64,000 nt of DNA from Fimbriosthenelais zetlandica (lineage: Eukaryota): contig OZ365114.1 in NCBI GenBank assembly GCA_977030845.1, positions 22,010,001 through 22,074,000 of the forward strand, in the 5' to 3' direction. A program made the translations under genes and the position numbers. Below the pieces are notes generated by a model. It was not told the origin of the DNA. It did not search any database and saw only the letters and a program-made list of their open reading frames with translations. This document shows, in pieces, positions 21,101-27,100 of the stretch (position 1 is the stretch's first letter; each line of letters opens with the position of its first letter).

Positions 21101-24100
21101 ATGTACTTGTTGAGATCATCTAAGCACAGTCCTCGACCCAGGCAGGGTACTGTACCATCTTGTCTCTCACAGTCATCTATATTGGACTGGCACCTTGTAC
21201 CTAGGTTGAAATGAAATGATACAATTCTTACAATTTATGTACATGATGATGGACATTTTGACATCTGGTATATAGTCCAGACTAACCCGCATATGGTTTG
21301 ACTAACCCGCATATGGTTTGCTAGCCATGAAATCCCCATTGATATATATATATATATATATATATATATATATATATATCATTGGGAGAAGATAATGATG
21401 AAATGACAAAACCCTGAATAAAATATCAGGAAAATCCCTGAGATATGAATAAAATAGAGATAACACTGATACCTGTAAGACCCTCAATGCATTCACAGCG
21501 GAAACCATCCGGAAGACGTGAAAGGTCGTTGTAGCAGGTGCCTCCTGACTCACAGGGGTTCAGGTCACAGGGTAGATGGACACAGTTTATTCCTCTGTAA
21601 AATACAAACATTCTAACTCTAAGGGTTTTAGAAACTGACAGATGTCAAGTTTGGCGTACCCTGGCCATATAATATGAATTTATTATTTGGCTGATGTATG
21701 AGTTATAGATCTGAAAACTGAACATAATCGATTGACGGATGGAAGTCCATTGAAGATAGAGTTACCCAATATTAAAAGTGGAATCATGAATATTATGCCA
21801 AAGCAAAGCCTTTTCTTGACTTGTAGGCCTGCTCAATGTTAACCACAGTCGCTACACATTATGAAACCTTTTGGCACGTACTAGTTGTGCAGCATATATC
21901 GCCCATTGACTATGGGCGATTCCCCCTGAATATGATCACATGAAATGCTCTTTTGGTTGGGTGAAATTTTCACACTTTGTCAATAGCCTCAGCACAACGA
22001 TTATAAACGACAGTTTCCTACATGCCAGGCTTATTAAAAGGTGGCCAACGGTGGAGAAAAAGAATTATTTTCAGATTAAGCTCTCGGAGAAATTATTCCT
22101 TTTTGCTCGAGGAAAGGCTAGGTACATAGCCACAAGCTGAACAATTGAACTCACGAAATGTGGCGTGTATTTCGTCACACAACAACAAATCAAATAGGTA
22201 AAAACTTTCATTAAACCGAGGTAGGGCTGATCATGAGACCTAGTTGAATGGTGATTTATTGGTTCATTCTGACACATCTAAATTTCCAACCGCAAACAGA
22301 TTTACTTGGGAGAGAATTTGAAAAACTGATTGAGAATAATTATTATGATATTTGGTATCATGAATTAGATTATAATGTCTAAATCCTATAGTTTGAATTA
22401 CATAGGTGTCATTGACTGATACTTATTATTTACACCAAAACTACAATTGGTCCGGTAATTATATATATGTTCATGAAAACCAGCTGGAGATCCCTTGTGT
22501 CCAGATTCTGAAGTGTGGGTTGTGTGACTTCTAGTTTATGACATAGAAAATATGTGTACAAAGCAATTACTTTGTATACAAACATTCCTCAGGTACTCTT
22601 CTCTTGTTTTTCCTTCCGCTGTAAGTTCCCAGGTTAGGACAAACATCTAAATAATAATGGGTTTGTCGCATTTTTATATTCTGTTAAGAACCCATTAAAA
22701 GAGACCTATCCTTCCTCAAATCAGAATTATTGCCATACTAATAAACAGTAGTAAGAAGGAAATAACAAAATCGTGTCTATTGTCCATAAAAATCATGTAT
22801 ACATCATTAAAATACTTTGAACGCTGAGCAATAGAAACTGCATAATTGGAAATGAATAGTTGAAAAGGCAATGAGGATTTTTGATTGTTTGAAAACCATG
22901 TATGTATGACATGCTAAACACATTAGACATACTATTACAAAATAGAACAATTATATTGCTTTTGTGTCTGTATACCAGGACAATATATCAAAATATAGAT
23001 GATGATCAGCATTTATATACTGCATCAAGTCAAGGAAAGGTGATTGAGATTGAAGCTATATGAATAATGTTAGAGTACGTATATGCTTGTATGATCTGCC
23101 CATATAGTTTTTCTTGGATTTTGTTTTTCCTGTACGAATTTATGCATGAACGATGTTAAAGTACATAAACCTATAAACATATGATGTTCGCAAATAAATT
23201 TTCTTAAATTTTTAATACTTTTCCTGTATACTTATCATGCCATCCTCCATGCTTTCAATAAGGAGGAAAAGACATGGAAGCTTGCATTTTTTCCTCATTA
23301 AAGACAACAACCAAACATGCATGATTATGGATTGGGTGGGTTCTGGCCAGTTTCAACCACAAACTGTAAACAACTTTACTAGGTATTAAACATGCCGCAG
23401 AAAGAAGGAGCTGTTAATGAAACGTTGCCGGCAGCCCGGAACAATAAATTGTTGCCTAACTACAGAAAGGTGCGTTTTCATGACAACGACTTTATGGCAA
23501 ATGAGCACATGATATAAAGTCGAGGAGTGTGTTCATTTTCATCAGTCGGCCTTCTGGATTCAGAGGGTCAACATAGTGTCTCCATCAACATGTTTTATCA
23601 AGGTTTTATCCTAGCTGCACTCTTTGCAGTATTAGTGGATTGTGGTTACAATCATTTTCCAGTGGCCTCCTCCAGTGAGGCCTACAATATGGAACTTCTG
23701 AGACCAAGCTATTACACAGATGGCTACATGGACGGCTCTTCTGAAGAAATTAAAGGGATGGATTTCCTAATAGACGATTTCCTCGACGCCGAATATCAAA
23801 GGAAAGACATGTTGAGAGACATGGGCAGAGACATGGACAGAGGAAAGGAGAGAGACATGGACAGAGGAAAGGAGAGAGGCATGGACAGAGGCAAGGAGAG
23901 AGGCATGGACAGAGACATGGACAGAGGCATGGAGAGAGACATGGGCAGACACATGGGGCCCGGGTATGAACGAGATGGACGTGGTGAATCAAGATCGCCA
24001 AAATCATCAGAAATATTCTTCTGGAATAAAAGAAGCCATGATGACGACATTATCAATTTCGATGACAAGGATGATTTAATGAGATTCAAAGATGACATGA

Positions 24101-27100
24101 GGAGACGAATGAGAGAAGACAACATGGATTTTAACAGTCCAAAGAGGAAATTCTTCGAAAGGAAGGACTCCAGGGTTAAATATAACCGTTACGACGCCAG
24201 AAAGGACAGAGACAGTCGTGGCTCCATGATTGGTCAAAGCAGTAGTCGACCCAAGGGTAACTCACGTCCACACTCTGATCACCGTGATCGCAGCATGAGA
24301 TCGTCTAGCAGAGAAGCCCATAAATATCCAAATGAAGATAAAAGCATTGAAGTAATGGCTTTTGGGAAGAAATATAAACCTGCAGAAGTGGAACAGCTTA
24401 GATACACCAGGGATGACCTTTACTACCAGAAAGCTTCAGATAAAGACAACCATGCGACTGAGGACTCTCGTTACAGTAAGTCTGGGGTGGAGAAGTATGG
24501 AGATGATGCTGAACACTTCATCAGTAAATTAGTAAAACCTACTGGCTCCTCAATTTTCAGTTTAGTTTCTGGCATCGCATCAAGAAGCAATGGGAAGGAT
24601 GATATGTGGAAAGAAAGGGATGTAGATCGGTTTGAATCAGAACCTAGAAGTGAGGAAAGAAAGTATGGGAGAAGATCCAAATCGTCCATGAAAATCCCCT
24701 CAGACAGGAACAGGTATTCCAGTGACTATAGCAGAGAGGCGAGTGAATGGAATATGATGAAACAGAGGGAAAAGCTTGGATTAGATGACAGTAGACAACT
24801 GCCTTCCTCTTATGAAAAGCGATATAACTGGCAAAGCGCTGAACGGGATATGGGGATGGGCCGCATGGAGAAGAGCCGAGAAAAATCCAAGGAGACAAGT
24901 GGGAGCTTCAGTTTCCTCCATGGAGGTATGTTTCCTTTCATGGACGGTGGAGACAGGGACTGGTCCATTCAGAAAGGGGACGCACGTAAACTCATGAACA
25001 AGGACAGAGGTTGGTACAGTTCTAAGGAAAACCGTGGTATGTTTATGAAGCCCGAGCTATCCAGAAGGGATGACAGAGATAGTAAAGATATGAGGCATAA
25101 GAAAGTCAGAATGTCAAGAGGACATGGTAGCAGATCATCAAGGCACTCCCGAGGCAGATCCAAGATGCCAGCCACAGCAGCCAGAAGAAAAATGAGTGTA
25201 ATCAGGAAGGACTTCCTTGACATGTCAAGGGGCAGGTACTATTAAGATCCAGAGTGTTGCTTTTCTTTGATTTAATATTTATGATACTGATCTATTATGT
25301 GTATCTAACTGGTTACATCCAGGAATAATCAGGTTGCCGCACTAAATAGATGTTACATTGTAAATAGTCCTATATATTTTGAGTACCTTAGAGTCATTTT
25401 CAAATTCTAATATATTTTCTCTCATATATGTAAGCTTCAAAATACAATATACGATATATGGAGGCAATTTGCACGGAGAAAATGTGTTCCATAAGTTGGC
25501 ATAAAAAGAAACTGTATTCTGCTAATGAGCTTGTATTGTAACGAAAATATCGCGATGACTGTTTTTCAAAGTAAATGTAAAAAACATTTGCTTTCATGTG
25601 ACTGACTGTGTGAATGATATGTAATGTGAATGATTTTGTAATGAAATAAAGAGTAAAATATCCTCCAAGTGTTTTACTGATAAAATACTAGATTTTAAGG
25701 CTGAGTCATGTCAGTGATCATTTATCTGAAACCTGAAACCATTTATCTGAAGTCCCAGACCCAAGGTCCAAGGGTGTTCACTGGAGTTTTAACCAACTAT
25801 CATTAACCCATTAGATATGATCCTAACACAACCCACATGCCCTCCCATCCATCTTCCCAAGTATGTAGCGGAATAAAAATTATGTTCGAATTATTCAAAT
25901 TCTCACAAACACAACCTCACGCACGCTCTTCCTTTCATTTCAAAGTTCAACTTGTGACCCATGTCTGTATCTGTGCGCTCTTCAGAGCCTTACGGTTATA
26001 TAACATCCATCTATATTGACACTTTAAAAACAGACACACCATCTCCATGTCTTGATATGCTAATCTATAGGCCCTCCAGATACACCTGGATTCCCTGGCC
26101 ACACAATGCTTTACGACTACTCATTATCATTCATAACCATCTCCCAGGAATCTACATAATTATGCATGAATAACATTATCCTTGAATCTTGTATATAACC
26201 ATGAAACGTCGTAGAGTACGGATTCAGATCTTGGGAAGAAGTTGGACTTACATCAAGGAAGAGCGTAATATATAAACCAAGACTATGGAACAGTTAGTTG
26301 TGTTCCTATCTTTATTGGGTTGCGTATTAGGATATGGCATGCAGAATGCAGCTTTTGGTCACGGCGGTGTGGGAAACTTGGGTGGCTATGGAACCGAACA
26401 GGGAATAGGATTTCCCGATTATGAAACCGCAATAGGTTCACATGGACAAGATCATAGCCATGGGCACAACCAAGGGTATGGACAAACTTCTTATAACCAA
26501 GTTCCCCATGGTAATGGACAAGGCAATTATGGCCAGGGACAAGGATCGTATGGTTCGTATGGACAAGGACAAGGACAAGGACAAGGACAGTATAACCAAG
26601 GACATGGTTCCTACCAAAGTAGTCAGAGATCGTACAAACCCTCAGCTGGTTCCTACAGCGGTAACCAGGGATCTTATGGACAAGGTCAGGGATCTTATGG
26701 GCAAGGTCAGGGATCTTATGGACAAGGTCAGGGATCTTATGGACAAGGTCAGGGATCTTATGGGCAAGGTCAGGGATCTTATGGACAAGGTCAGGGATCT
26801 TATGGACAAGGTCAGGGATCTTATGGACAAGGTCAGGGATCTTATGGACAAGGTCAGGGATCTTATGGACAAGGTCAGGGATCTTATGGACAAGGTCAGG
26901 GATCTTATGGACAAGGACAGGGATCTTATGGACAAAGTCAGGGATCTTATGGACAAGGTCAGGGATCGTATGGAAAGTCATCCTATGGGCACTCATCTCC
27001 TAATTATGGTCATTCCGATAATCAAGGCTATGGCCAGGGCAACGGGGGCTATTCCCAGGGTGGATATGCTGATCAGGGAGATTATTCTGGGGGTTATGGT

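Follow-up and report, generated by a model that had tools for sequence, protein, structure and literature searches.

An intron-free gene for a predicted secreted, disordered polyampholyte nested antisense in an EYS-type gene of Fimbriosthenelais zetlandica

Background

A 64,000-nucleotide (nt) stretch of the Fimbriosthenelais zetlandica genome (GenBank assembly GCA_977030845.1, contig OZ365114.1, positions 22,010,001 to 22,074,000 of the forward strand; this whole stretch is referred to below as the window) contains a long open reading frame (ORF) at 23590-25245, which lies inside a gene of EYS type and encodes a Met-, Arg- and Asp-rich chain with MDRG repeats. The locus raises the question of what such a protein is, whether it belongs to a known family, and what it could do. 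An earlier interpretation made from the letters of the window (the sequence-only reading) had described an orphan secreted polyampholyte, had likened its composition to that of cephalopod reflectins, and had proposed a condensate- or material-forming role while leaving room for a prohormone-like precursor. The follow-up analysis reported here indicates that the ORF very probably encodes a genuine secreted-type disordered protein, which has an orthologue in a second species.

Gene structure and orthologue

The frame is open on the plus strand from 23527 to 25245, and its first ATG (23590) is followed by 551 uninterrupted codons and a stop. At the stop-codon frequency of the window (0.059), an open frame of 572 codons is expected by chance at about 1e-15 per position; the frame is thus far longer than chance would give, and the intact ORF of the sequence-only reading stands. 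The elements that make up the gene are as follows.

23590..25245, plus strand: coding sequence of the predicted secreted basic disordered polyampholyte, a single exon of 551 amino acids (aa) and a stop
23466..23519, plus strand: conserved proximal promoter block with a TATA box at its end, delimited by blastn against contig L001, positions 830-884
25645..25650, plus strand: putative AATAAA polyadenylation signal, the first canonical one, 400 nt 3' of the stop, located by reading the sequence

The TATA box, GATATAAAG, lies at 23511-23519, approximately 70 nt 5' of the ATG, and the start codon stands in the context AACATGT, with A at position -3. From TATA box to AATAAA, the gene appears to be compact, about 2.1 kb long and made up of a single exon.

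When 5.8 billion protein clusters were searched through a word index, P0001 (504 aa, phmmer E 1.4e-33) was the single protein retrieved; it is encoded on Logan contigs L001-L003 from three runs of a second species. These contigs carry intergenic sequence and are therefore genomic DNA, and the P0001 coding sequence is identical in all three runs, which may or may not represent separate individuals. The two proteins are 38 % identical over their whole length in a global alignment, and the context of the orthologue's ATG is identical to that given above. In the codon alignment the proportion of synonymous differences (pS) is 0.82, which is saturated, and the proportion of nonsynonymous differences (pN) is 0.42 overall, falling to a minimum for the gene of 0.30 in residues 256-345. 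These proportions are given in place of a ratio of nonsynonymous to synonymous rates (dN/dS) because dS is saturated. The combination of a saturated pS with pN values of 0.42 and 0.30 indicates deep divergence with purifying selection, and, judged from this alignment, the protein is under purifying selection across deeply diverged lineages.

Conservation extends to the promoter. The block that ends in the TATA box is 80 % identical to L001 830-884 over 55 nt (blastn, E 4.7e-6) and lies at an equal distance from the ATG in both species. Its core, GTTTTCATGACAA at 23474-23486, forms part of the consensus AAAGGTG(C/T)GTTTTCATGACAA(C/T)GA(C/G)TTTATG, which has been kept although the silent sites of the gene are saturated, and this argues for a conserved transcriptional input into the gene. 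Within the block, TTTATG resembles what we take to be a Cdx/posterior-Hox site and GGTGTG resembles what is presumably a T-box half-site; neither allows a transcription factor to be assigned to the block.

The same conservation bears on the suspicion that the frame is non-functional, or that its product is an RS/RD-type protein that is not secreted, being for instance nuclear, and has an N-terminus that only resembles a signal peptide. That suspicion draws on the R/S/D-rich composition and on MDRG-type repeats, which are also seen in two ORFs of this genome with apparently intracellular products (L005 and L006, below) and in an RRM-type protein (P0003, below). Against it, saturated synonymous divergence has left the ORF, the hydrophobic N-terminus and the promoter conserved, and the conserved parts do not include the MDRG repeats. 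The suspicion is regarded as extremely improbable. On the strength of its conservation, 23590-25245 is taken to be a functional, intron-free, TATA-driven gene.

Protein features

Four regions of the chain are referred to in what follows.

23590..23643, plus strand: predicted signal peptide, residues 1-18, supported by hydropathy, conservation in the orthologue and an AlphaFold helix at residues 2-20
23815..23957, plus strand: tandem array of (D/G)MDRGKER-type repeats, found by Tandem Repeats Finder (TRF) with a period of 24 nt, 5.9 copies and 88 % matches
24370..24600, plus strand: most conserved core, residues 261-337, 52 % identical to the orthologue, with a run of 16 identical residues and low-confidence AlphaFold helices at 264-287, 304-314 and 322-333
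25093..25242, plus strand: basic Ser/Arg C-terminal tail, recognised by the positive charge of its final 50 residues and by a conserved end motif, RK.S.(I/V)R.D(F/Y)L.MSR

The N-terminus holds the sole strongly hydrophobic segment of the protein (Kyte-Doolittle maximum over 19 residues of 1.76, against no more than 0.92 elsewhere), whose hydrophobic core, together with A9, A10, A13, L15 and C18, is unchanged in the orthologue, in agreement with the signal peptide that had been predicted. The one Cys of the whole chain is residue 18. Residues at -3 and -1 of the putative cleavage site are small in both species (V-D-C here and A-N-C in the orthologue), which fits cleavage directly after Cys18, and we infer that such cleavage leaves a Cys-free mature chain in both species; if it does follow residue 18, the earlier description of the mature chain as free of Cys is correct.

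The mature protein is predicted to have a mass of about 63 kDa and a pI of about 9.6 (9.61, compared with 9.14 for the mature orthologue). Arg (13.4 %), Ser (12.3 %), Asp (11.6 %), Lys (8.7 %) and Met (6.9 %) are abundant in this species, charged residues make up a fraction of 0.40, and the net charge is +21. The further traits listed in the sequence-only reading are all present, namely the DMDRGKER-type repeats, high Met, Tyr-rich ends (12 residues at positions 38-49 and 11 residues at the C-terminus), the basic Ser/Arg tail and dibasic sites, of which there are 18. Several of the overall proportions are kept in both species (Arg approximately 13 %, Ser 12.3 %, Asp plus Glu 18 %, Lys 7-9 %, Tyr 4.5-7 %, charged residues approximately 40 %, no Cys). 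The Tyr-rich C-terminal end is a trait of this species rather than a conserved one, being GRYY here and NRPF in the orthologue.

A chain with 12 % Ser and 18 % Asp plus Glu, disordered and of secreted type, could belong to a biomineral or phosphoprotein matrix, in which Ser-rich acidic stretches would be phosphorylated by a secretory-pathway kinase and bind calcium. The motif S-x-[E/D] is nevertheless not enriched over shuffled sequences (16 against 12.7 +/- 3.0 here, 12 against 11.4 +/- 2.9 in the orthologue), and the chain, which is basic overall, contains neither poly-Asp nor poly-Ser tracts, so that this explanation is considered very improbable.

Hydropathy and charge point to disorder. 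The grand average of hydropathy (GRAVY) is -1.5 here and -1.6 in the orthologue, with a mean hydropathy far below the Uversky boundary, and the charge-patterning parameter kappa (0.13 here and 0.21 in the orthologue, compared with about 0.17 in shuffles) indicates well-mixed charges. AlphaFold2 produced a model without a tertiary fold (mean predicted local distance difference test score 40.4, predicted template modelling score 0.18), which is weak evidence since its input alignment held two sequences only. Past the signal peptide, isolated helices were modelled at 58-97, 160-181, 184-188, 379-395 and 529-547 in addition to the three in the core; those from residue 264 on match conserved islands, and the helix at 58-97 continues into the repeats that are peculiar to this species. 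Read alongside the values for hydropathy and charge, the model fits a chain that is mostly intrinsically disordered with short recognition elements. With its hydrophobic N-terminus, near-balanced charge, low hydropathy and lack of a stable fold, the protein falls into the class of secreted intrinsically disordered polyampholytes, a descriptive class and not a homology family.

Conserved islands and dibasic sites

Five strongly conserved short blocks are common to the two orthologues. The core contains a 23-residue block, which holds the run of 16 identical residues, and a second consisting of KYGx plus a 14-residue block, with NG further on. Other conserved islands are PS.R.RYSSD(Y/F)SR, GS(F/Y).FLHG..F and the C-terminal motif of the tail. 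In residue numbers, the five islands are 261-283, 302-327, 373-383, 438-448 and 533-547. As far as the pairwise comparison tells, the features retained under selection are the signal peptide, the overall composition, the basic tail, about five short aromatic or hydrophobic islands, and the promoter block; the islands probably form transient helices, to go by the modelled structure.

A signal peptide, the absence of Cys and 18 dibasic sites would also suit a regulated-secretory precursor, either of a prohormone or neuropeptide or of the granin-like packaging type, in which dibasic cutting would release the conserved blocks as active products. Three of the sites are conserved (RR 172-173, KR 185-186 and RK 533-534), the last of which precedes a conserved C-terminal piece of 17 residues. 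These are, however, three of 18 in a chain with 22 % Lys plus Arg, for which many dibasic sites are expected by chance; the best-conserved blocks (261-337) are not framed by dibasic sites that the two species share, and the Gly-dibasic amidation sites (FGKK, YGRR) are not conserved. For a neuropeptide precursor, 551 aa without repeated peptide copies would be atypical. Granins are acidic proteins with a pI of about 4 to 5.5, whereas the values found here are 9.1-9.6, and membership in the granins was rejected for this reason. The prohormone-like precursor therefore finds little in its favour, and the explanation as a whole is judged quite unlikely.

A second explanation starts from the charge of the tail, the last 50 residues of which carry a net +15 here and +7 in the orthologue. 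A basic factor of mucus or body surface might bind polyanions (sulfated glycans, microbes, nucleic acids) and act in an antimicrobial, protective or mucus-organising manner without being structural. The net positive charge, the conserved Arg-rich basic tail, the disorder and the secretory signal are all compatible with such a factor, and a precedent is provided by Arg-rich disordered secreted peptides that condense microbial targets, as described in the excerpted text of two papers (PMC13720017, PMC10028949). Its net charge would be low for this purpose, since the basic residues are almost offset by acidic ones and leave a surplus of only +0.02 to +0.04 per residue, and the conserved aromatic islands suggest specific partners instead. 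This explanation is considered unlikely.

MDRG repeats and the reflectin comparison

The repeats that had attracted attention are not among the kept features. The entire MDRGKER array falls in a gap of the alignment with the orthologue, in which the nine MD dipeptides found here drop to 0 and Met falls from 6.9 % to 3.2 %. The array and the high Met content are accordingly read, from the alignment, as a recent, species-specific repeat expansion.

A paralogue was sought in the F. zetlandica genome and none was found, the search giving only two weak matches, both to unrelated ORFs with long MDRG/ADRG-type runs. The first, L005 1258-1833 on the minus strand, lies at approximately 15.341 Mb of G000:C27, and the second, L006 1048-2865 on the minus strand, at approximately 24.551 Mb of G000:C21; the latter looks like an RD/RE-rich protein of nuclear type. 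The repeats in these ORFs take the forms (D/N)RGMDR or DRGADRGMDRG. Their occurrence in unrelated ORFs indicates that such repeats arose several times in this genome, and since MDRG/ADRG repeats are found in L005, L006 and the unrelated proteins P0002 and P0003 (below), they appear to be a recurrent low-complexity theme and not a family signature.

Reflectins are cytoplasmic, and the protein described here carries a signal peptide, as judged on hydropathy and conservation only. A regular-expression scan for the reflectin motif [M/F]D(X)5MD(X)5MD(X)3-4 gave no match in either orthologue. Membership in the reflectins was rejected on these two grounds together with the absence of a Pfam match at E <= 1 and the lack of conservation of MD repeats and Met. 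Traits that are not conserved cannot be the conserved basis of function, so the reflectin-like features on which the earlier comparison drew, which are absent from the orthologue, are best regarded from the sequences as a recent lineage-specific accident of repeat expansion.

Gain of repeats in one lineage and fast overall divergence are also what might be expected of a reproductive secretion protein, such as a component of an egg coat, jelly, cocoon or seminal gel, and a basic, Cys-free, disordered chain would be in keeping with this. Vertebrate semenogelins offer a comparison, as basic, disordered, repeat-prone and fast-evolving gel proteins. The conserved core and promoter stand against the very rapid turnover of many reproductive proteins, and this explanation, which proceeds by analogy, is thought improbable.

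Searches for relatives

Pfam assigned no family to the whole protein at E <= 1, and a feature search of the ESM Atlas with the whole protein and with residues 255-400 gave no usable match. The best result of a profile search against the Protein Data Bank (PDB) had an E value of 0.91 and was taken as chance. An exhaustive search with a hidden Markov model (HMM) profile against 1.84 billion representatives returned P0001 and two further proteins, P0002 and P0003, and nothing else. In the latter two the match is confined to the repeat region and is due to low-complexity runs of (S/P)MDR/SMSRP, and both were set aside as chance matches; P0003 is a protein of RRM type. A search with the core alone for short fragments (46-147 aa), such as might come from transcriptome assemblies or further species, found none. 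Four diagnostic peptide strings used in a full-text literature search retrieved no paper from the library searched, and a broader literature search retrieved general papers on coacervates only.

The earlier statement that no family could be recognised is upheld by the Pfam, PDB, ESM Atlas, word-indexed and exhaustive profile searches alike. The label of orphan holds in that sense and needs amendment in another, the protein having one clear orthologue (P0001). By the outcome of these searches, the two proteins represent a new sequence-orphan family that is restricted to one invertebrate lineage and is of a familiar kind, the lineage-restricted secreted low-complexity proteins of marine invertebrates.

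The host gene and its other nested genes

The following features place the gene in its surroundings.

21064..21171, minus strand: nearest downstream EGF piece of the host gene, one border of the intron, from a scan for EGF patterns
29058..29459, minus strand: nearest upstream EGF-coding ORF of the host gene, the other border of the intron, with EGF modules in its translation
26285..27355, plus strand: downstream neighbour, which shares intron and orientation with the gene and codes for a predicted secreted protein rich in Gly, Gln, Tyr and Ser that contains about 15 QGSYGQG heptads

The window contains 25 EGF patterns, which occupy only the minus strand between 35963 and 158 and leave the interval from 21171 to 29058 free. 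Pfam found EGF and Laminin_G in minus-strand ORFs, with Laminin_G at 12349-12762 and 1101-1463. A further ORF of the host (15249-18356, minus strand, 1035 aa) starts with EGF modules and is then mostly Ser/Thr/Pro-rich and mucin-like. An N-terminal run of EGF modules, a mucin-like stretch and a C-terminal alternation of EGF and laminin-G are therefore all present, and by module content the host is an EYS-type gene, an assignment in which EYS and Crumbs-like genes are not told apart by a tree. The ORF at 23590-25245 lies antisense within an intron of about 8 kb of this gene, as had been proposed.

Another host intron holds, also antisense, an intron-free TRIM-NHL gene (8523-10517, plus strand) that encodes 664 aa with a RING, two B-boxes and an NHL propeller.

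Several genes are thus nested in the same host, the TRIM-NHL and Gly/Gln/Tyr genes among them. Simple antisense nesting is common in this host gene and says nothing on expression in the eye, and the caution voiced on this point in the sequence-only reading was well placed.

The heptads of the downstream neighbour have a period of 21 nt, 14.7 copies and 96 % matches. Its orthologue on L001 lies at 6207-6758 on the plus strand (within the translation of 6006-6758) and starts with MEKLMIFLAIQ at 6207, in the same relative position. The neighbour has a conserved upstream block of its own, at 26056-26103, which corresponds to L001 6005-6051 and has the core GCCCTCCAGATACA. As the orthologue of the neighbour lies downstream of the P0001 gene on L001, the arrangement of the two genes is, on the evidence of the contig, conserved in the second species.

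Elsewhere in the window, about 32 kb away, a multicopper-oxidase ORF of laccase type (57267-59078, plus strand, 603 aa) has all three domains, and nothing links it to the gene described here. Two other ORFs have no Pfam match, one at 45838-46278 (minus strand, 146 aa) with a hydrophobic segment and one at 51148-51828 (minus strand, 226 aa) that is exon-like.

Proposed role

A material- or condensate-type role, as suggested earlier, is the favoured reading of the protein, held tentatively and at somewhat less than an even chance. After secretion, the chain would be a multivalent 'sticky string'. Through opposite charges that are well mixed and through its numerous Arg and Tyr side chains, it could bind other copies of itself or polyanions, for example sulfated glycans or mucins, and it might also bind the Tyr/Gly/Gln-rich protein encoded next door, with the conserved islands serving as specific docking sites. 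In an extracellular secretion this would give rise to a gel, a coacervate or a coating. The full account, in which a secreted disordered protein acts in an extracellular secretion through multivalent charge and Arg/Tyr contacts, is tentative to a similar degree, and we infer all three of its elements (secretion, the material or condensate role, and partnership with the neighbour) from features of the sequence.

Four points weigh against this account. Charges that are well mixed and not blocky would, taken alone, make soluble coils likelier than self-coacervation. The gene is on record in just two species, so that conservation is judged from one pairwise comparison. The promoters of the two neighbouring genes share only TATA-like 7-mers, and with no other promoter word in common, co-regulation of the pair is not supported. 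The adjacency of the pair could also persist merely from the sharing of one intron.

A more specific version of the proposed role is improbable. In this version, extracellular condensation would be 'split' between two proteins, with the polyampholyte and its FUS-like neighbour being co-secreted and co-condensing, through Arg-Tyr and charge contacts, into a coacervate that would mature into a worm-specific material; specific docking would fall to the conserved aromatic islands of the polyampholyte. Were the pairing to act in this way, it would offer a natural two-component system for Arg-Tyr phase separation outside cells. If the gene is expressed in a gland, it would represent a new, sequence-unrelated case of marine worms building extracellular materials from disordered proteins; otherwise it would be one among many lineage-restricted secreted low-complexity genes of marine invertebrates. 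The division between features that are kept (islands, charge and promoter) and features that drift (MDRG repeats and Met) would in addition serve as a ready map for mutagenesis.

Comparison with known systems

Cephalopod reflectins resemble the protein of this species in high Met, Arg, Asp and Tyr and in MD dipeptides, and in principle in being disordered and prone to assembly; they are set apart by their motif and Pfam family, by MD repeats that are species-specific here, and by the signal peptide of the present protein. Granins and prohormone precursors are likewise hydrophilic, disordered chains with a signal peptide, numerous dibasic sites and no disulfides, whereas the protein described here is basic, most of its dibasic sites are not conserved, and it lacks cleavage sites at the flanks of its conserved blocks.

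Adhesive and cement proteins of marine animals that act through coacervation, such as the Pc proteins of the sandcastle worm and the mussel foot proteins, show no sequence similarity to it. The present protein lacks Gly-Lys-Tyr decapeptide repeats and poly-Ser tracts, and it is a near-balanced polyampholyte, not a polycation or polyanion. The likeness lies in a secreted-type, disordered, Tyr-containing and repeat-prone chain of basic pI (9-10), and in this case the gene stands beside another that encodes a low-complexity, Gly/Tyr-rich protein of secreted type.

In the phase-separating proteins of the FUS family, which combine a Tyr-rich prion-like domain with an Arg-rich domain, condensation is driven by Arg and Tyr 'stickers'. 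Polypeptides containing Arg and Tyr are the topic of a published study, going by the excerpt of it (PMC13339138). The locus described here would provide two separate secreted-type proteins and not one nuclear RNA-binding protein, and there is no homology; yet, in a comparison made from the genes alone, the same two kinds of sticker would be supplied jointly by the Arg-rich gene and, next to it, the gene rich in [G/S]Y[G/S]Q.

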